Below, one piece after another: positions 1-62,516 of a stretch of 64,000 bases of DNA. This stretch comes from Bugula neritina (taxonomy: Eukaryota; Animalia; Bryozoa), in contig OZ037765.1 of NCBI GenBank assembly GCA_964035545.1, positions 27,775,504-27,839,503 on the forward strand, in the 5' to 3' direction. The translations under genes were made by a program, and so were the position numbers. The notes below the pieces were generated by a model that was given only the letters and a program-made list of their open reading frames with translations, did not search any database and was not told the DNA's origin. The stretch's first letter is position 1. Every line of letters begins with the position of its first letter.

Positions 1-2567
1 TTACTTAGAGGAATTTAACTCTTATTATAATGTAATTATCTTCCAAGATATATTACAACATCACTACTTGGATGCATACAATGTCATATTTATATTGGCA
101 TCAACATAATTTTCAATAATTTCCAATCTATTAACTTGAGCATTATGATTGTGATTATTTTATAAATAAGGCGATGATTAGGCACTGTTGGTATTTTGGT
201 TCAATTTATTAATAGCTGTAACAGGCAGAGTTGTAAATATAATGGATATATCAAAATTCCAATGGGTATAGTACTCTAACACAACATTGATACTAATAAT
301 TGTAGCCACTTACTCTTAGAGTTAGTGAATAATGATACAGTCATAACAATCTGAATTTCAATCAGAATTAGAGATAGGCTGACTGCTTTATAATATTATA
401 GTTATGTCAAATTGAATTTATTCACTATAACTATACAATTTATGATTATAATTATAAATTAAAATAATTTAAATATTATATAATATATTGATAATTATTG
501 GAATCATAATTATATTTATTGTTATGATCATTATGATTATAATTATTTAATATTATCTTTGTTTGTATTTAAAGTTGTTCCTTAAATTTAAAGTTGTTTA
601 AATTTTATAAATTTATTATAATTATATTACTGTATAAGTATTGCTATTAGTATTAGTATAATTAAATTATTATAATTTATATTTTATTATTTATATTATT
701 ATTTATTTTACTTTTTATTTTAAGACCAGCAGTTCAAATTAATACTTGTGTCGTTTGTTTTATATTATAACTTACAAGTATAACTATTAACATAATAATT
801 TTACATTTGTTATTAGTATTACTATGAATATAAATATTTATATTAATATAAATATAGCTATTGGTATAACTTATACTTATAGTTATAACTAATATTATAA
901 GTAATAGTTTCGAAACTGATTCTGCTCCGTAACTGATACTGTCATATGATTATGATTATCATTATGACTGATAATAGTATTAATAAATATAACCATTGAA
1001 TATTATTAATAATAGTTCACCAATAGGCGACAGTCATAGACTTAGAGTTAGAGTGAGAGTCATAGACATACTCATAGTCATAGTGATAGACTAGTGATAC
1101 TCATAGTCATACTGATACTGTGATTTAGTTTCACTGATTCAGTTACAAATTTTAAAACTTGGTTTTACGTAGACAACTACTAACCTATAATTCATCACAA
1201 AACGGTTGAAAATCATCATTTACTGCATATTTAAGAGTAATTTTCTGGTAGTGTGGTCGACATGATAATTGAAATTAAAATAGGGAAAATAATTATTTTG
1301 TGATTTACAGCAAGTTACAAACTAGCGAAATGGAATAGTCCATTTGAAAACAGTCAAATTAGTTACCTTTCTTGATGTTGCGTAGCTAACGTTAGTTATT
1401 AGTAGCCGCCCGAAGAGTAACATTCATGTGATTTGAACTACGAATAACGAGAATCTGTGACAAACCCGCTTCTTAATAACTTTACGCGATATAAACTCAC
1501 GCTACAATAGGGCTATTTTGCCATCCCCACGTCAGAATAGGACACGGAGGGCACGCTCGCGGGCAAGTCTGGGCAAGTCCAAGACACCTAATATGACCAC
1601 TTTTACTTACATTTTTGTAGTGTTTTCGTATAAGAAATTGGATAAAATGCTGATAAAACAGTTGAAAAGCATGCAAACTTTTGCTCAAATGTAATAAATA
1701 ACCTGGAAGCTTACCGCCTTTAAGTTATAAATGAATAAGACCTGAACAGACAATTCCGAAAATAACTCTAACTGAAAAAGCATAAAATACAGAGTATGAA
1801 GTAATTTTATAAGACCTGATTTTAGTAACATAATTTGAGTGACTGAAAGTTCTCTCTACTGCATGGAGGAGCATTACATTCGGGAATGAAAGAAAGTAGC
1901 ATCTTTGCCATTTGCTAACAATTCCAAAATATAGCCAATAGAGATAGACTATAGATCAGGATGCCTAGCCTGTTGGCATTACAGATAAGGGCTTCATGAT
2001 CGCTACTAGACTGTGTCTAGACCAGCCAAACCACAAAACATTCTTTTCTAAAATTAGCAACCCAAAAATGGCAATACCCTGATTTTGTGACAGTATTAAT
2101 GGGTACTAAAATTTGACATTCTAAATACACTATCAACAGTATTGAGAAAAATGAGTGAAATCAACAGAGTTTGGTTATTTAGGGGAAGTTAGGTGCTGTC
2201 AGCTACAGATTCTCACAGTTGGCTTATTATGTTATTAGTAGGACAACCTGCACCACATAGTATTATGTCTAAACTCTGAACTATAAACATAACATACCAC
2301 TGCATAGAATTTCCTGTCCCCCCCTGCTGACACAAGGGGGAGGGACACTAGTCTATTATCTGCAAACTTTTATTTGCTGCTTTATTAGTTGGACATGTAC
2401 ATAAGCCTAAGGTTTGAGAGTTGATAAGGGGAAACTCTGTTGGTTTATGGTGGCCCTGCTGGCTGAGTAAACAAATACCTTGCTGTGAGTTGTTGTATTT
2501 CATTAACTGGTTACCCACTGCCTTTGATAGGACAATAGAATAAATATGTTTACATTGAGATACTGAC

Positions 2568-44158: not shown

Positions 44159-54369
<10,211 letters not shown>

Positions 54370-54913
54370 GATTTTGCATCTGTGGAAGCTTATGCTATGT
54401 TTACAAAGGAAACTGGTATATGACCTTAACGTTATGGTTTCTAGTGCCTGATGTCAGAATAAAAATATTGCAGGACTCTTGCAGATGTGGTAGTCAACTA
54501 GAAATAACTGACATTTTAACATCATATTCACCATACATGCATCATTATACGAAACTGTAGCAACTTTCAACTATGAGTTACGTTTATTTACTTTTATTTT
54601 TCTGTTTATTTTGGATGATTGTTTTTTTATTCTCCTTTATTTTTATATCTTATATGTAACAGCTGCTTGTCTCTGCTAGAAATGAATATGAATAAATCCA
54701 TAAATAACCAATTAATAAAAAAAACTCACTATTTACAAAACTATGTATATATCTGAATTTATTTTATACAATAAAAAATATTATAAAATTGCTTTAGCTG
54801 TCAACAATCAACTACAACCATTTCACCATTCTGCTATACACAATGTCAGGCACACAGTAGTTTAACTTTTTATAAATTATTACAACTCACATTAGATTCT
54901 TGAATTTCATAAA

Positions 54914-57900
54914 ATGTATTCTAGTGTTATGAATGCTGTAGCTTTCTTGCTGCTGCTGTTACAACATCTTTTTGTGAATAATATTAAGTCTCAAAACATC
55001 ACTGTCATGTCAAGGTCACTGGTATATTGTACACATAGTGGAGATCAAGAATGCTCTGTCCAGTTGGCAATAATAATCAATATTTTCAACTGGACTAAAG
55101 TAAGTGACAATGTTATGATTATAAGCTATGATTTTATATGTGATTTGAATAGCCATTTTTAGTAGCGATATATTATTACTACGTTCATTAAAAGAGCAGG
55201 TGGAAATAATTATAATATATTTATAATTTCTTATAATGTGCAATATAAATGCATATATCACACTATGGTGCTGGTAAATTGTTTGTATAATAAAAAACTA
55301 GATTGAAAGTTTTCTGCTTACAGTTGAATTCTTCATGAAGTTTCATAATGCATGGGCAGTTTTCACTGGGCATTGCTGCACTATTATTTAAATATCAATT
55401 ATATAACCCACATGCAAATTACAAATTTATCTTCTGTTAAGCAGTTTGGTTGTACATAGGCTTGATCTTAACATTTTATTCCTGAAACTATAGTCGCCTG
55501 ATAGATGCTGCTGTGCCATAAGATTCACACATATTTCTTTGCTTCTTGTTTATAGATATTTTTTTGGTATGTGTTGAAATAAAATGAACTAAATTCAACT
55601 CAACAAGTCCAGTAAAAGGAAACATAGTCACAAATTGATTTTATAGTTTGAGAATTTAGTACATAATAAGACTGTAATTATTTATATAATCGTATGTTAG
55701 GTGATATTTTGTTTATTTTCCAAGTAAACTAGTAAGATGGCAACTTTTGATGTCTACTGCTCAAGGTAATTACATACATGTGTACAGAATTAAAGCCACG
55801 ATGTAAAATAACTTTAGATACAAAGCCATGCAATATCTGTTGATCATATAATGGAGAATGGCAGAAGAGTGAAAATTTCCCCTCCACTAGAAATAGCCAT
55901 TAAACCTGAAATCGGCACAATTACACACGACATGTATAAGCTAGGCCAAGTGAACGCAGGACCTGAGATAACAGAAATTGATAGCTATTCCTGTTCAAAC
56001 ATTTCTCAGAAAATGAAAACATCCTGTTTTTGCTGCTCTAAACCCAAACTGCTACAGGAAGCTGATAATAGTAGGTCAGCAGCAAAAGTGAAATGTATCT
56101 ATGACAGCAATACATGGTACAACCTTTACGCTGCTGGAAAAACTTATGTAGACCAAAATCTAACCGGTGAGTTATCAGCAGTAAGTGGTGAGGAAGGGTG
56201 GTTTGCTAGCACTGCCAGTATATAAGTTAAATCTAATAAACATAGTTTATTGATAATATTATATTGTTGTGGCAGTAATAGTGTTACTTCTTCTGAAATA
56301 TAACTGGGTGTCATGGTATGTCCAAATTTATGTTTTGTTGGAATAGTACTGATTAATAGACTATTTTGAAACTGTTTGTTAAGAGTTATGTTCTCCTTAA
56401 AAAGTAGCAAACTTGGCATAAAGTACTATTACAACAGAATAGAAACCTAAAATGATAATATCGAAATCATTTTAAAACACTAAGGGATGGTGTAGTGGTA
56501 TAGCAAATTAAAAACAGGCATAATGCTTAAAATTCAACAGCTGAGTACAGTTGGATGAATGATTTTGTATGTTATGCTGTTGTGTAACTAGTGGTGATGG
56601 AAAGCTTTCTAATATTATAATATGAGCCATGGGCTATGCAATGTGTCCGAGCATTTTACATTTTCCGTAGCCATAGTCCATAAATCTATACACATAGAAT
56701 AAATATGAATCAGTGTTAGTTGGCGCCAGTATATATATTTTTTACTTCATGCCGTTGTTTATGAAGTTAAAATAAAAACAAATGATATTGTTATTTAACT
56801 GGTTGTATTGTAGTGGACATATTGTGGAGAAAAAGCACATCCTCTAAGTTACAAACAAACAACTTTTTCTTCACTGGAAATCAGAGAGAAAAAGAGTATA
56901 ATGAAGTAGTTGTGAGAAATATAATTCACGCAGAAGATAGTGCGGTAGCTTTGTCGCCAAATTATCGATTACTTGTATCAGAAGGCAAGTGTTGTATTAT
57001 AGCATTGTTGTTATACAAGCTTTTGGAGAAAAGGCTATGAAAAGCTTTCAGTTAAACAGCTAATGTCCTATGTACATCCTGATTTCCCTCTCTCTGTACT
57101 ACTCAACTATAGTTAACATGTTCTGTGCACAATAAACATATTTGTAGCAATCCTATAGCAAGGTCTATGCATATATACAAACTCACTACACTTTGATAAA
57201 CTACTGAAATATTTAACCATATTGATCTTGTTATTGTTTTTTTGTTGTAAAAAATAAGTAATTTGTGATGTATAATTTGTATAATTTGTAAGTTTGTTAG
57301 AGTCTTTTATTAATGTAAAACATGAACACTTTCTGAAGGAATTAGCACAGCTGTAGTCTGCATAAACCATTGCTGTGTTACACACTGTAAGACTAATAAT
57401 CTGTATGCATACACTGTAGATGACAGTGATGGTCAGATGACCACAGGCATGCTAGGAGACAAGGCTTTGATGATTGATAAAAGCAAAATTGACTATACAG
57501 GAAAAACGTGTGCAAAAATTGGAGTGTCAAAGGAAACCATCATAAAGCAAAGAGACTATTGTAGTCCCCTTGTTAGTTGTGTAGAAAACCAAATCAAAGA
57601 TTTGTTGTCAACAGCAAAACTGTCAGTAACTGTTCCCAATTCAAGGTTAACAGGAAACGTTGATAAGAGAAAGTTGACTCGACAAGGCGTGGCAGCAAAT
57701 AGTTTGGAGATTTACTTACCAGCTGAAGGTTATTCAATAACATAATTTCCAGTAGCTACATGTACTTTATAAAGAATGTCCATATCTCCACATTGTTCCA
57801 TAAAACTTGCATTAAACAGCTGTTATGTACCTGTCAACTTTTCCAAGTGTTCTAACATGATTAGTCTGATTAAATAGTAAAGAATATGCAATATTTTATA

Positions 57901-60900
57901 AAATGCTTTACAGCTTTTTGGTGCATGTTTTATTGTAAATAGAATATGTTTTAGATACTCTTTTTCTGTATGATTTCCCTTCAGCTCAAATATCAGATAT
58001 TTGGAGCTACTCGACTAAGAACCAATTCTTCAAAGTACACGTGAGTCATGCTGCTCAACCTGTTTCTTTTTACCTCCACTATTATCCTTCAGAGAACATA
58101 TTTAATTTTTAGTTTATGTAACCTTGTGCGTTACAAACAGCCAGGTTGGTTACAGTAGCTGGTGTAGGCTGGAAGCTGTAGATAATTTAAACAGAACATC
58201 TAAAAAGTATATAGGGAGCAGCCCTGGTCTAGGGGGTTAGAGCGTTTGTTTAGTAAACACGAACCCCTACAAGGCCATTGGTGATGTTAGGAAGAGCATC
58301 CAGTCACAATTGCTCCTGTGCCCCATACGAATAAGTCTTTAGCCCAATTTAACAAAAAAAAACCTTTTTCATCAGGGGTTGCTCACAAGGATGATGACTA
58401 TAACCTTGCGTGAGTTTTTCTTTCATTTAGACAGTGGGTGGTAAACTCTTCATAAAATAACTTCTTTTACAAATAACATTTCTGATAGAAGTTGAAACAT
58501 AATAGATTATGTAACTTGGCTGATTACTAACTGGTTAACTTATTCACATTTAGTAATTAAAAGCATTTAAATAGTTGTTGGCACTTATAAACAAAGATTT
58601 GTTACAGAAGTTTTATACAATTTTAGGTCAAAATATTTCATCCAATGAATACAAGTGAAGAAGTTATGGTAAAAATAAACCATTGTGATAGCCCGAACAT
58701 TATAATGAGACCAGTGATACCACAGCGTGAAGTCCTGACTAGTTACCAAAGCAGGGAGTTTCTGTTTACAATCTCTTACAGGGAAAATCCACCACTTGTT
58801 ATTGATGACATAAAGTGCATTACAACTGTTCAAAACTACCAATCCAAGACAATTGCTAGGCGCAGGTAAAAACTTCAACTCCCTCGCTGTAAGGCTTTGG
58901 TTCAAGATATAAGCTTTGCATTATAGAGTTAATGTCAGTGATTAACTAGACACATACAACTGTTTTTGCCAGTTGAGCAAAGTAAGGACAGCCCAAGATT
59001 TTGAACAATGTCATGGTAAACAATAAAATATTAAATAATGATATTAGCAAAATGTCTATTTTAATTTTCAGTTGTTAATTCAGTTGAAGTGTTGCCTTCA
59101 TGTTATTTACAGATTTGGTCTCAATGTATTGCACGCTGGTCACTGTATAGGACCATGCAAATGTATTTGGCTAAAGAAGTTAAGTTCTAATCGAAAATGC
59201 AAACTGATGGAACTAGAAGAAGTTATAGAAGCTGGCTTTAGAGGAAACAACTATATCACCAATGGCTTTAGTCATTTTAAAGATAAAAAGGTAAACTGCT
59301 TTAATTATAAATATCTTTCATGAAAGAACTTTCTAATATTTTCTGAGTGCTTCATATAAGCAAGTTATTTATAATTAACTCAAATTGTTTTGTCTTGACG
59401 TTTTATTTGTTACATGCAGCTTATTTGTAATTGTAGTTTGTAAATTGTAGGGTTTTTAAAGATGTGGGTCAAATACTGCAGGCTTATTAGGTTGGCTTAT
59501 TAAGTTGAATTATTTATTTTATATAATACAGTATTTATACAGTTAGAATAAGTAAGAGGAGCTCACAATGTAAACAGCTATCATATTATGACATCTTTCA
59601 GAACTGCGTTCAGTTTATTCTCAAACACCCAACATTTTTTAATTGATTTTTAGATAAGCTTGTCAACGATATCAGGAATAGCCCTACTATTTTCATCAAT
59701 GTTAGTTATAGGGTGGATTAAAGCAATTGCTGGACTTTTTCAAAATTGTAACAAAACCAATAAATTTGGCTTATGTCTGTTTACAAGGCATAGTACAAAA
59801 CAAAAAGACTTTGATTGGGTAAATCTTATCAACTTATAATACTATTATAATGTATGTAATTATATATTAGTATACTGTATACAGTTTATGTATATAATTT
59901 AATGCTAAAAGCAATAAATTAGTATAAATAATTAAAGTTCTAACAGTAAAAATATTATCTTAGAACAGTGAACTAACAATTTTGAAGTTTGATAACAAAT
60001 TCTACCAGCAATTTGTATAATATGACTTAACAGCTTTAAAGCTTGAATTGGCCTATTAGTATAAAGACATGTACATCAGTGAAACGCACTTTATTGTATA
60101 GGATGTTAACATAGCTGTGTGAACACATTGTGTAAAGATAAATAATGCCTTTATCCACATTTTTTGTTTTTCTACATTGTAGAACATATTTCTGCAGTGC
60201 AAAAGATTATATGTTGGTTAAACTATCTGAACATCTAGCTTTTTGAGTGCTGATAGCAGAAGAATGATATTTATTAGGTTAATGTTATTACAGGAAGTCG
60301 GTTCTGCCTATGCCAACATCCAAACTCGCCAACCTCCTGGCTTCTCAACCACTCTCAAGTTCTTTCTTATCAACTCCTTGTTTTTGTTTTACCTTCCAAT
60401 TTTCCCACTGCACTACGCAATACTTAAATGTCGATCTTACAATCAGCATGTCCATGGAAAGATTCGGAAACCTGTTTTAACATCAAATGCTGGTCTTGGT
60501 CCAAAAGCAAGAAAAAATTTAAAGCAAATAAATAGTAAGTCATTATAAATAAATCTTGACTTAAAAAACATTTTTAGATATTGTTAATTTTTTTTTGTCG
60601 TTGTGACATTATATAATTTGTCTTAAGTTTATTTACTGCATCCTCACACCTTTCAACAGCCAATTTGTCAGCAAACGATAACTCTGAAAAGCGCGAAAGG
60701 GATTGGATGGAAGATATGCTAATATTTGGAAAATCAGAATCTAAACCAGTTAAGGGTTTTAGCCAAGAAACATCTCCAGCTGTGCTTGAAGTCACCAGCA
60801 CAATCTCTAGCAGTCCATCACTGGGTCAAAGTTCGTCAAGCAATAATTTATTCTTTGGCAAGAAACATGTTTCAGAAAATACCCAGAGAAATATTAGTGA

Positions 60901-62516
60901 CAGACTAAAAGAAGATTTCATAAATGATCTGAGAGCTCAATCTAAGAGGCACCTTAAGGTTTGTAGTTGCACTGAAAAGTTTGTAGGTAATGTAGGCTTA
61001 TAGCTCTGTAGATAAACTTGGGTTAGTGAAGGCAAGTTATATACATTTTTCACAAAAACATAGTATTATCTTTATCCAGAAGTTTGCATCCAAGAAGAAA
61101 CTTTATTGTTGCACATCTTTGCTAATGACATAGGTAACTAAAATATTCATCAACTAATATACTTTCAAAATTAAGCTGTTGCTTTGAGATTCAGTCTTAA
61201 TTGTCATTCACATGAGATCTTTCTATTGCTTAACAACACAAATGGAAGAACCCAACAAAGTGTTTGAATACAAATTGTTTACAGTGAAGTGCTTTAAGAT
61301 ATACCTTTCTATAGCTTATAGAATCTGAAATATCTTTAGTTCTATCACTGACTTGAACACAAGATAGGAAGATATACATATTGACCTTAGAAATTACTGT
61401 TAAATCTGCTTGCTTTTCAGGCTTCCAAAAAGCACAAAAATAGACATAAGGACTCTCCATTTCTCAGCAAGTCCGTAGAGCACCAACCACTGGTTAGCAG
61501 TGCATTCTCTGGAACTCTGGGTAGCTGTTCATTTGATCAGGACGAAGAGTTGCTGAACTACAAGGTGAAAGTTGCTCACCTCATTTATACCAAGTCAGTG
61601 ACTTTCGTTTAAGAAGCCAATGAAAATTATATAATTTGATAATAAAAACTTGTTCTGTGATCAGTCTTTTAACAGATTACTGTGTTATGCGAACTGCGAA
61701 GTGTGGGCTGCTAGATATGCCAGCTAACAATATTCATGCTAAGATGGTTATGTAGATTACAGAGGAAATACTTAATAAGAAGGAAAGAGATAAATTGGAT
61801 AGGCTGCTTGATATAGAAACACCATTATACTATAATAGCTGCAGTCCATTGCAGGGCCTTGTGAACCCAGGGTCTATGTTCAGCTTGTGTGGGAGACTTC
61901 AGAAGACTAGGAACTTTGTTTATCAGGTAGGATATGTTTGAGATTACACTGTTACATGCTTCATTACACTAAGTTTTTGGATCATACGTGTAAAACAGAG
62001 GCTATGTAATACACTGTAATACTTTTATTAAAAATAAAAGAGAAACTTTTTTATGTTTACTACTTTATTTATCTAAATAAATGTAGTTTACTCTATTTAT
62101 TTAGATAACTGAAGTAGTAAACAAAATGTTTTTCGTATATATTTTTTTAATGAAGTTACTAGCCCTTAAGGTTATAATATTTTTCATCATTGCAAAAGAA
62201 CTACTGTTACATCAACTATCAAAAATAATGCTGCAATGCTTATGAAAGCAGTCACTATGAAAATTATACTATGCATGTATATTAATAAAGTTGTGACAGG
62301 TAAACAGAGTCTATCAACATTGTTTTGCAGTTTGACCTTGCACTGTATAAGACACAGCTATACGAGTGCAACAGAAATTACCTAGTGCAGCTAGAAGAGC
62401 CTCAACAACTACACACCAAAGATTTTGTGATAAAATTTTCTTGTAAAGAAGCTATTAAGTTGGTAACTGTCAAGCCTGTGTTCCCATGCCTCAACAAACA
62501 AATAAATTCGCTATAA
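54914..62516 (+). CDS. HAP2: HAP2/GCS1 (hapless 2) class II gamete fusogen homologue, ~907 aa; exons 54914-55099, 55818-56166, 56814-56984, 57420-57728, 57955-58040, 58627-58865, 59113-59290, 59654-59818, 60294-60534, 60660-60958, 61421-61564, 61756-61926, 62331-62516
   Basis: Signal peptide, then VMSRSLVYC-x7-C; QVNAGPE; FCCS; KCIYDSNTWYNLY; HAP2-GCS1 core LMIDKSKIDYTGKTCAKIGVSKETIIKQRDYCSPLVSCVENQIKDL; Ig-like domain III; Cys-rich stem HCIGPCKC...C...EAGFRG; TM ISGIALLFSSMLVIGWIKAIAGLF; second hydrophobic segment; C-terminal domain ending PVFPCLN. All 12 junctions are phase-compatible, 2724 nt with no internal stop. Confidence 0.88.
58214..58419 (+). mobile_element. tRNA-derived SINE, copy 2, in HAP2 intron 5
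   Basis: Same head GGGAGCAGCC-TGGTCTAGGGG, body TGGTGATGTTAGGAAGAGCATCCAGTCA and tail GACTATAA-CTTGC-TGAGTTTTT as 16569-16761. T-arm/B-box partly deleted; extra A/T-rich segment. Confidence 0.85.

Follow-up and report, generated by a model that had tools for sequence, protein, structure and literature searches.

The window, a stretch of 64,000 nucleotides of the Bugula neritina genome (contig OZ037765.1), carries on its forward strand a gene that, read from its sequence, is the single, intact HAP2/GCS1 gamete-fusogen gene of this genome (Table 1). Its identity is set by exon 4, which reaches 40.5 bits against PF10699 (Pfam; cut-off 27.4) and 38.4 bits in a whole-genome scan, and which also matches the solved HAP2 chains 7s0k, 5ow4, and 5ow3. 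A check for paralogues was proposed in the initial annotation; whole-genome searches at the family level, with the exon-4 protein, and with the tip profile found one HAP2 locus and no second HAP2 with a normal tip.

Table 1. Features of the HAP2 locus (positions are those of the window).
Feature	Position	Strand	Description
HAP2 exon 1	54914..55099	+	ATG at 54914, GT donor at 55100; signal-peptide-like hydrophobic core; first conserved Cys pair
HAP2 exon 2	55818..56166	+	Domain II strands b, c, d and connections (membrane-facing tip); AG acceptor, GTGAGT donor
Strand b Pro and Glu	55962..55976	+	Glu at Pro+1 and Pro+4 (alignments and hhalign)
Shortened bc connection	55992..56036	+	Cys, 10 residues, Cys, Phe, Cys-Cys
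cd-loop tip	56037..56093	+	19 residues, no Cys, no aromatic
Last conserved tip Cys (AHC Cys equivalent), with Trp-Tyr seven residues on	56094..56120	+	Invariant alignment columns; start of strand d
HAP2 exon 3	56814..56984	+	Ends in a GC donor (56985) instead of GT; no other donor brings its phase in line with exons 2 and 4
HAP2 exon 4	57420..57728	+	HAP2-GCS1 signature (ij loop) with three Cys; PF10699 match
HAP2 exon 5	57955..58040	+	tblastn matches to L007, L011, L014, L015; splice sites read
HAP2 exon 6	58627..58865	+	Domain III-like, 2 Cys; tblastn match to L011; splice sites read
HAP2 exon 7	59113..59290	+	Cys-rich stem; tblastn matches to L007, L010, L014, L015; splice sites read
HAP2 exon 8	59654..59818	+	TM segment and juxtamembrane Cys motif; best 19-residue hydropathy 2.04; conserved in L010, L014
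Further conserved exons	about 60285-60539, 61421-61573, 61756-61929, 62328-62495 (within 60285..62495)	+	tblastn to L007, L010, L014, L015, same order and strand; boundaries approximate

Exons 1-8 are all open and consistent in phase, each has matches in related loci, and they comprise 557 residues in whole codons. Scored exon by exon rather than on the joined protein, they have the layout of a type I membrane protein, with a signal peptide (best 19-residue hydropathy 1.83, at residues 3-21 of exon 1), an ectodomain of approximately 500 residues, a TM segment, and a cytoplasmic tail, as read from the hydropathy of exons 1 and 8. The cysteine count is even, both over exons 1-8 (18) and in the ectodomain of exons 1-7 (16, two of them in exon 1). 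The phases of exon 2 fit those of exons 1 and 3, its splice sites and phase are conserved in the related loci L012 and L010, and the peptide quoted in the initial annotation is an exact forward-frame reading of the open reading frame at 55818-56222 that contains it. Exon fragments from related invertebrates share 34-51% identity with exon 4. The conserved exons downstream of exon 8 probably encode the HAP2 cytoplasmic tail, the alternative being a separate downstream gene.

The same exon 2 is found in two other sequencing runs (L005 and L006), from a genome approximately 10% diverged from that of the window, with 95% protein identity and the same 19-residue, Cys-free tip. Compared with L005, the exons are 95.7-97.1% identical and free of indels (exon 1, 95.7% of nucleotides with no gaps; exon 3, 97.1%, dropping to 86% past its donor), whereas the introns are 81-88% identical and carry indels. 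Over exons 1-3 the dN/dS ratio comes to 0.24 (Fisher p 4.6e-4); exon 2 taken singly has 0.17, and its 19-residue tip holds three of its six replacements (p 0.055). Purifying selection of this kind rules out decay of the gene, but not a new function.

Exon 2 alone has no match by Pfam, by phmmer against the PDB, or by a clade profile against the PDB. Its homology to the b-c-d tip of ordinary HAP2 rests on profile-to-profile comparison, in which hhalign aligns the tip profile of the clade with that of ordinary HAP2 over 103 columns (93.8%, E 1.7e-7). Nine columns of the tip alignment are invariant, including Asn, Pro, Cys, Phe-Cys-Cys, Cys, and Trp-Tyr. Strand b of canonical HAP2 carries the pattern Pro-x-Glu, in which the Glu is the partner of the loop Arg. 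Here the two Glu residues flank this register and none lies at Pro+2; among the relatives, Glu lies at +3 in L012 and is lacking in L010, which has Gln at +1. The displacement of the Glu described initially is seen here, but either residue could be the equivalent one. In ordinary HAP2, 15-17 residues separate the second Cys from Phe-Cys-Cys, more than in the shortened connection found here, and the arrangement Cys-x10-Cys-Phe-Cys-Cys is common to L012, L013, and L021. Since these three loci share the arrangement and keep the other conserved cysteines, an alternative alignment, in which the second conserved Cys would be the first one of the tip and the Cys ahead of Phe-Cys-Cys would be new, was rejected.

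From Cys-Cys to the last conserved Cys there are 29-44 residues in five ordinary HAP2s, as against the 19 of the initial annotation, which a direct count upholds. The only hydrophobic residues among the 19 are one Val and a Leu-Leu pair (56049-56054); the charged residues number seven and give a net charge of +3. The initial annotation was also right that the tip has no aromatic residue, that the His ahead of the last Cys is replaced (by Lys), and, from the alignments and hhalign, that CCxC has Lys in place of its third Cys and that the Cys expected after the Arg is missing. The Arg itself (56073-56075) lies seven residues ahead of the last Cys; its equivalent is Arg or Lys in L012 and L013 and is absent in L010. 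With loop lengths of the PDB chains counted by eye, loop 1 (Cys-Cys to Arg) has 12 residues compared with 14-15 in Trypanosoma cruzi HAP2, a Cyanidioschyzon-type HAP2, and P0009, while loop 2 together with Cys8 (Arg to Cys9) has fallen from approximately 15 residues to 6. The proposed deletion of the fusion-loop region therefore applies to loop 2, but not to loop 1, the length of which is kept. Of the seven Cys that, together with one Glu and one Arg, show no variation among 38 published HAP2s (Fedry et al., 2018; PMC6089408), the b-c-d region here keeps five, and the two that are absent are the equivalents of Cys167 and Cys190. Because these form one disulfide in Chlamydomonas HAP2 (PMC6170185), their disappearance was correctly described as a paired loss. 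Taken as sequence, the data support a minimal, polar cd-loop tip that would lack one conserved disulfide.

The tip is also poorly suited to the membrane interface by sequence measures. The best five-residue Wimley-White sum is +0.9 kcal/mol, compared with -1.5 to -2.2 in ordinary HAP2, and the best amphipathic window has a mean hydrophobicity of -0.53; neither measure predicts a membrane-interface partitioning segment in the tip, and the tips of the relatives are likewise devoid of a favorable interfacial segment. An AlphaFold2 model of exon 2 alone (nine-row alignment; mean pLDDT 63.5) is unreliable at the tip, with values below 50 at residues 73-88. Foldseek comparison of this model with the PDB returned nothing significant, with Arabidopsis HAP2 in the top row (E 0.94) and hantavirus Gc and Fsx1 among the first five, and was counted as no evidence. 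Look-alikes of exon 2 in the ESM Atlas were phage capsid families and were rejected as being at chance level.

A phmmer search with exon 4 against 1.84 billion representative proteins gave seven matches, mostly single-exon fragments, and a word-indexed profile search gave four. The exon-4 tree sets an animal clade apart from protist-type HAP2 with 100/99 support, while branching inside the animal clade is not resolved; comparison with cnidarian, insect, and annelid HAP2 relies on published statements (PMC6089408) rather than on sequences. Across the clade, conservation extends to the three-Cys HAP2-GCS1 signature, domain III, stem, TM segment, and tail. A short, aromatic-free tip is common to three other uncharacterized invertebrate lineages, with 25 residues in L012, L013, and L011, 28 in L021, and 20 in L010, and each of these tips has four Cys. 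These comparisons show that the window gene belongs to a divergent invertebrate HAP2 clade with a compact, aromatic-free domain II tip. They go halfway toward the proviso of the initial annotation that equally short loops might be common in functional animal HAP2s, in that loops as short do recur in putative animal HAP2s; loop 2 deletions are also known in HAP2 of Porifera, Cnidaria, and Annelida (PMC6089408). Because the relatives with short tips keep four Cys, the window lineage has lost two predicted disulfides, that is, all four Cys of the compact cd loop, comprising the Cys167-Cys190-type pair and an extra pair that the relatives retain, and is left with a flexible, polar, net-basic loop. 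The polarity of this loss rests on parsimony, as the two conserved Cys occur in every other lineage and in the outgroup, and the complete absence of tip Cys is so far unique to the window lineage.

Among HAP2s of known structure, a close parallel is offered by T. cruzi HAP2 (PDB 5OW4), which has three small loops including Leu167/Leu168, no amphipathic helix, and a loop 2 that is "just a turn" (Fedry et al., 2018; PMC6089408). Its Leu-Leu pair belongs to loop 1 and contributes to the non-polar patch. The relatives of the window gene share with it an additional Cys pair of disulfide type in loop 1, each having four Cys between Cys-Cys and the last Cys. However, T. cruzi HAP2 has 31 residues and four Cys in this interval, Ile-Phe in loop 2, and canonical Pro-x-Glu and Arg-x4-Cys, whereas the window gene has a much shorter bc connection and a tip without Cys or aromatic residues. 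Chlamydomonas reinhardtii HAP2 (PDB 5MF1, 6DBS, 6E18) shares the framework of Cys-Cys in strand c, Trp-Tyr after the last Cys, and a HAP2-GCS1 ij loop that holds three Cys, but it has 44 residues from Cys-Cys to the last Cys and three amphipathic helices with Trp and Phe. Its Cys167-Cys190 disulfide and function-essential Arg185-Glu126 salt bridge have no canonical form in the window gene. Arabidopsis thaliana HAP2 (PDB 5OW3) is functional with one loop absent, loop 1 being absent in flowering plants (PMC6089408), but it makes up for this with an amphipathic fusion helix, the non-polar face of which is essential in vivo, and no such hydrophobic face is predicted here.

Outside HAP2, archaeal Fusexin1 (Fsx1; PDB 7P4L) has a fusion loop (cd loop) of only six residues, without which fusion nevertheless fails (Moi et al., 2022; PMC9259645). 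It differs in that this loop is uncharged and shaped by Ca2+, and in having a fourth domain, one to four TM segments, and a very distant sequence. The nematode FF fusogens EFF-1 and AFF-1 fuse cells with one another, adopt the class II fold, and have a domain II tip that is not hydrophobic (PMC8784728), but they have no sequence relation to the window gene, which is a PF10699 member. Pfam found no FF domain in twelve exon and candidate-ORF translations, which gave only PF10699 and one sub-threshold chance match.

The explanation that best fits these observations, and to which we would give an even chance, is that this is an intact HAP2 that works as a class II fusogen in fertilization and makes shallow tip contact with the target membrane. 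Contact would be made through the Leu-Leu pair, aligned to the non-polar patch that Leu167-Leu168 form in T. cruzi HAP2, and may be aided by attraction of Lys and Arg to lipid head groups. Compared with other HAP2s, such a protein would very likely be more reliant on the avidity of the trimer, or on a partner at the gamete surface to keep the membranes in proximity, and the fast amino-acid turnover in the loop would fit a surface exposed to the partner gamete. T. cruzi HAP2 and Fsx1 offer precedents for a small tip. Against shallow insertion, no interfacial segment is predicted in the tip, the related lineages do not conserve the Leu-Leu pair, and the alignments place the Glu-Arg pair out of canonical register. 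Furthermore, the loss of hydrophobic tip residues abolishes liposome binding and fusion in Chlamydomonas and Arabidopsis HAP2 (PMC5332557; PMC6089408).

Unconventional membrane engagement, whether bilateral as in EFF-1, partner-dependent, or repurposed, was suggested in the initial annotation and is a legitimate hypothesis. It is possible, if unlikely, that this HAP2, and perhaps the whole clade, fuses like EFF-1/AFF-1 or Fsx1, acting in trans from both gametes, or docks to a protein receptor of the egg rather than to lipid. The polar, charged tip, unfavorable to the interface here and in the relatives, would suit such a mode, as would the lack of a normal-tip HAP2 elsewhere in the genome and a loop that evolves fast, as a recognition surface would. 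EFF-1, which must be present bilaterally, also carries a polar, electronegative tip, the fusion of heterologous cells by Arabidopsis HAP2 was bilateral only (PMC8784728), and Fsx1 acts bilaterally in BHK cells (PMC9259645). However, published genetics place the requirement for HAP2 on a single gamete in most of the species tested (PMC6089408), the tip here has a net basic charge, unlike that of EFF-1, and the Leu-Leu pair occupies the position of the non-polar patch in T. cruzi HAP2.

Loss or change of the fusogenic function, with the protein kept for adhesion or signaling or in early decay while another fusogen acts, is improbable. To our knowledge, HAP2 has been lost in many animal lineages and is absent from many bilaterians, and this protein is highly divergent, with Pfam recognizing only exon 4 and phmmer finding few matches; its Glu/Arg register is disturbed and two "invariant" Cys are gone. 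On the other hand, the dN/dS ratio, the confinement of indels to introns, the eight open exons with conserved splice phases, and the clade-wide conservation from signature to tail all speak against such a loss or change, and the first and third of these disfavor the repurposing suggested initially along with decay. Fedry et al. point out that introns lie on either side of strands b, c, and d, so that exons might be shuffled (PMC6089408). Even so, it is hardly credible that the short tip reflects a mistake of assembly or annotation, or that another exon or splice form supplies the loops, given that a single open exon runs without a break from Cys-Cys through the 19 residues to the last Cys, that two independent runs of the diverged genome contain this exon, that L012, L010, and L021 have orthologous exons with the same boundaries and similarly short tips, and that a profile including ordinary HAP2 tips finds no other such exon genome-wide.

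HAP2 is, as far as we know, the only gamete fusogen found across eukaryotes. The mechanism of HAP2 is thought to rest on hydrophobic loops held by a conserved scaffold of disulfides and a salt bridge, and we know of almost nothing on how animal HAP2s work. A selectively maintained, single-copy HAP2 without these hydrophobic residues and two of the scaffold Cys is a natural test of which parts of the scaffold are needed, and can also test whether unilateral insertion is universal. Its compact-tip relatives with four Cys extend this into a natural gradation open to liposome and cell-fusion assays, and the gene adds a HAP2 to a phylum for which the literature searched held no earlier report. A broader proposal, that the whole invertebrate clade, with the bryozoan-type lineage as its extreme, gave up lipid insertion by the cd loop and fuses bilaterally or through a protein receptor, seems to us doubtful. 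If true, the clade would be a natural intermediate between insertion-type HAP2 and the loop-less FF fusogens, and the "invariant" disulfide 5 and the hydrophobic loops would be dispensable for a working gamete fusogen.

The HAP2 gene of the window is intact and under constraint, and carries a minimal, polar, Cys-free cd loop between the Cys-Cys and the last conserved Cys of the domain II tip. The peptide quoted in the initial annotation is found without mismatch in a forward-strand open reading frame (55818-56222). Exon 2, which holds this peptide, follows an AG (55816-55817) and stops at a GTGAGT donor (56167), with phases compatible with exons 1 and 3. Exon 4 matches Pfam PF10699 (HAP2-GCS1) at 40.5 bits against a cut-off of 27.4, and is also similar to the solved HAP2 chains 7S0K, 5OW4, and 5OW3. 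The intron after exon 3 has an apparent GC donor at 56985-56986 (AAG/GCAAGT), since this is the sole site that preserves the reading phase into exon 4. Searches, folding, and counts were all performed exon by exon, with no spliced protein. Exon 3 also contains a Phe-Phe-Phe run (56850-56875), kept in a sister genome about 10% diverged from the window. With a Wimley-White five-residue sum of -3.24, this run is one of only a handful of ectodomain segments beyond the tip that are strongly interfacial; its position would place it near domain I rather than at the tip.

Exons of the window HAP2 gene and length of the HAP2 tip, in residues from Cys-Cys to the last conserved Cys (PDB chains counted by eye, all others by script)
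Feature	Window position	Strand	Tip residues	Tip Cys	Remarks
Exon 1	54914-55099	+			ATG, hydrophobic signal-peptide core, Cys pair
Exon 3	56814-56984	+			Phase fits exon 2
Exon 4	57420-57728	+			PF10699 signature
Exon 5	57955-58040	+			Open, phase fits, counterpart in related loci
Exon 6	58627-58865	+			Open, phase fits, counterpart in related loci
Exon 7	59113-59290	+			Open, phase fits, counterpart in related loci
Exon 8	59654-59818	+			Transmembrane segment; open, phase fits, counterpart in related loci
Window tip	56037-56093	+	19	0	By script
L010			20	4	Clade relative
L011/L012/L013, with P0011 and P0012			25	4	Clade relatives
L021, with P0013			28	4	Clade relative
L017			29		Ordinary HAP2; by script
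T. cruzi			31		By eye
P0009, P0010			33		Ordinary HAP2; by script
Cyanidioschyzon-type			33-34		
Chlamydomonas			44		By eye

Pfam and PDB sequence searches gave no match for exon 2 alone, and relatives were therefore gathered stepwise. A phmmer search with exon 4 against 1.84 billion proteins returned single-exon fragments from other invertebrate-like genomes, whose contigs, together with a metagenome scan using the exon-4 alignment, provided loci with an upstream exon (L010, L011-L013, and later L021). Ordinary protist-type HAP2s (P0009, P0010, and L017-L020) came from the same searches, and P0009 can be aligned over the tip to the Chlamydomonas, T. cruzi, and Cyanidioschyzon HAP2 structures. 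An hhalign comparison of profiles built from five clade tip exons and from five ordinary tips gave a probability of 93.8% (E 1.7e-7, 103 columns). In the joint tip alignment, strand b has an invariant Asn and an invariant Pro; the first and last tip Cys, the Phe-Cys-Cys, and a Trp-Tyr seven residues beyond the last Cys are likewise invariant. Together these show that the positional homology of exon 2 with the HAP2 tip, as claimed in the initial annotation, is real.

A published alignment of 38 HAP2s is anchored on nine invariant residues, namely seven Cys plus a Glu and an Arg (Fedry et al., PMC6089408). The third Cys of the CCxC motif, Cys167, forms a disulfide with Cys190 (Feng et al., PMC6170185). 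In the window HAP2 the Cys167 position is a Lys and Cys190 has no equivalent; since these are exactly the two published disulfide partners, the initial annotation was correct in describing a paired loss. The total number of Cys in exons 1-8 is still even. The same annotation read the fusion-loop region as apparently deleted, which holds for loop 2 and its preceding Cys (six residues from the Arg to the last Cys vs about 15) but not for loop 1, which is retained, though now polar (12 residues from Cys-Cys to the Arg, where T. cruzi, Cyanidioschyzon, and P0009 have 14-15). The bc connection is shortened as well, with one residue separating the second tip Cys from Cys-Cys vs 15-17 elsewhere. The window tip has no aromatic residue, its only aliphatics are Leu-Leu and one Val, and seven of its residues are charged (net +3). 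Its best five residues have a Wimley-White interfacial energy of +0.9 kcal/mol, compared to -1.5 to -2.2 for ordinary tips. The Leu-Leu aligns with that of T. cruzi HAP2, published as part of a non-polar patch. In an AlphaFold model of exon 2 only, pLDDT is below 50 across the tip, and Foldseek found no significant match with this model.

Compact tips free of aromatic residues also occur in three other lineages of the divergent animal clade to which the window HAP2 belongs, and compaction and aromatic loss are thus clade-level traits. The four tip Cys of these lineages comprise the CCxC Cys, an extra pair that recalls the kinetoplastid extra disulfide 5b, and one that closely precedes the last conserved Cys. 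Loss of all four is so far confined to the window lineage and, by parsimony, would be derived. The Glu-Arg pair drifts within the clade: L012 has the Glu at Pro+3, L013 has Lys in place of the loop Arg, and L010 lacks both the Glu and the loop Arg. An exon-4 tree separates the animal clade from protist-type HAP2 at 100/99 support, with no resolution inside the clade. At least six distinct lineages of the clade occur in marine and other metagenome and read-assembly collections (L011-L014, L010, L021, L002-L004, and L009; ENA, JGI, and Logan contigs), and a collection of 15 billion proteins held no annotated full-length protein for them.

HAP2 is normally single-pass. The exon after the transmembrane exon (60285-60539) encodes a further hydrophobic stretch, about 20 residues long and conserved, with counterparts at L007:2652-2897, L010:6148-6414, and L014:1847-2116. 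In L014 it begins only 33 bases past the transmembrane-exon reading frame, so this exon probably belongs to the HAP2 gene, whose tail could then contain a second membrane-associated segment. Further downstream, forward-strand exons at 61756-61929 and 62328-62495 share 52-55% identity with L010 (7567-7818 and 8082-8261), a conservation above that of the HAP2 ectodomain; they represent either a conserved cytoplasmic domain of the clade HAP2 or a separate syntenic gene. Just upstream of HAP2, a proline-rich coding stretch (poly-Pro, formin/WASP-like) lies in a forward frame at 53974-54366 and at L010:1346-1795, making the neighborhood syntenic between distant clade members. Long dinucleotide microsatellites occur near HAP2 in two lineages (window 52656-52813, CT-type and reading as Leu-Ser repeats; L007:1-147).

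Tip variability is already published, including loop 1 loss in flowering plants and loop 2 deletions in Porifera, Cnidaria, and Annelida (PMC6089408). In the literature searched, no HAP2 was found described that combines absence of the Cys167-Cys190-type disulfide, absence of a non-polar motif in either loop, single copy, and purifying selection, nor did any paper found there link HAP2 with Bryozoa. Searches with the Pfam family, the exon-4 protein, and the tip profile (ordinary tips included) each led to a single locus, so no paralogue or alternative exon supplies normal loops in this genome.

How such a tip would act can be read in several ways. The preferred reading, held at about even confidence, is a shallow, avidity-dependent contact in which Leu-Leu and basic residues would touch the membrane, probably aided by a partner protein; small tips are functional in T. 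cruzi HAP2 and in Fsx1. The main rival, an insertion-free mechanism, bilateral or receptor-docked, has precedents in EFF-1 and Fsx1 and is a less likely candidate. Repurposing or early decay is improbable, decay being disfavored by the selection data: Nei-Gojobori estimates over exons 1-3 give dN 0.025 and dS 0.105 (ratio 0.24, Fisher p 4.6e-4), and exon 2 alone gives 0.17. Three of six exon 2 replacements lie inside the tip (p 0.055), a hint that it evolves faster. An artefactual short tip is essentially excluded; the 19-residue Cys-free tip recurs in both sister-genome contigs from other sequencing runs (L005 and L006), which align to 52757-57108 at 89% nucleotide identity, with exons at 95.7-97.1% and zero indels vs introns at 81-88% and many indels. 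We infer that the window HAP2 retains a role in gamete fusion.
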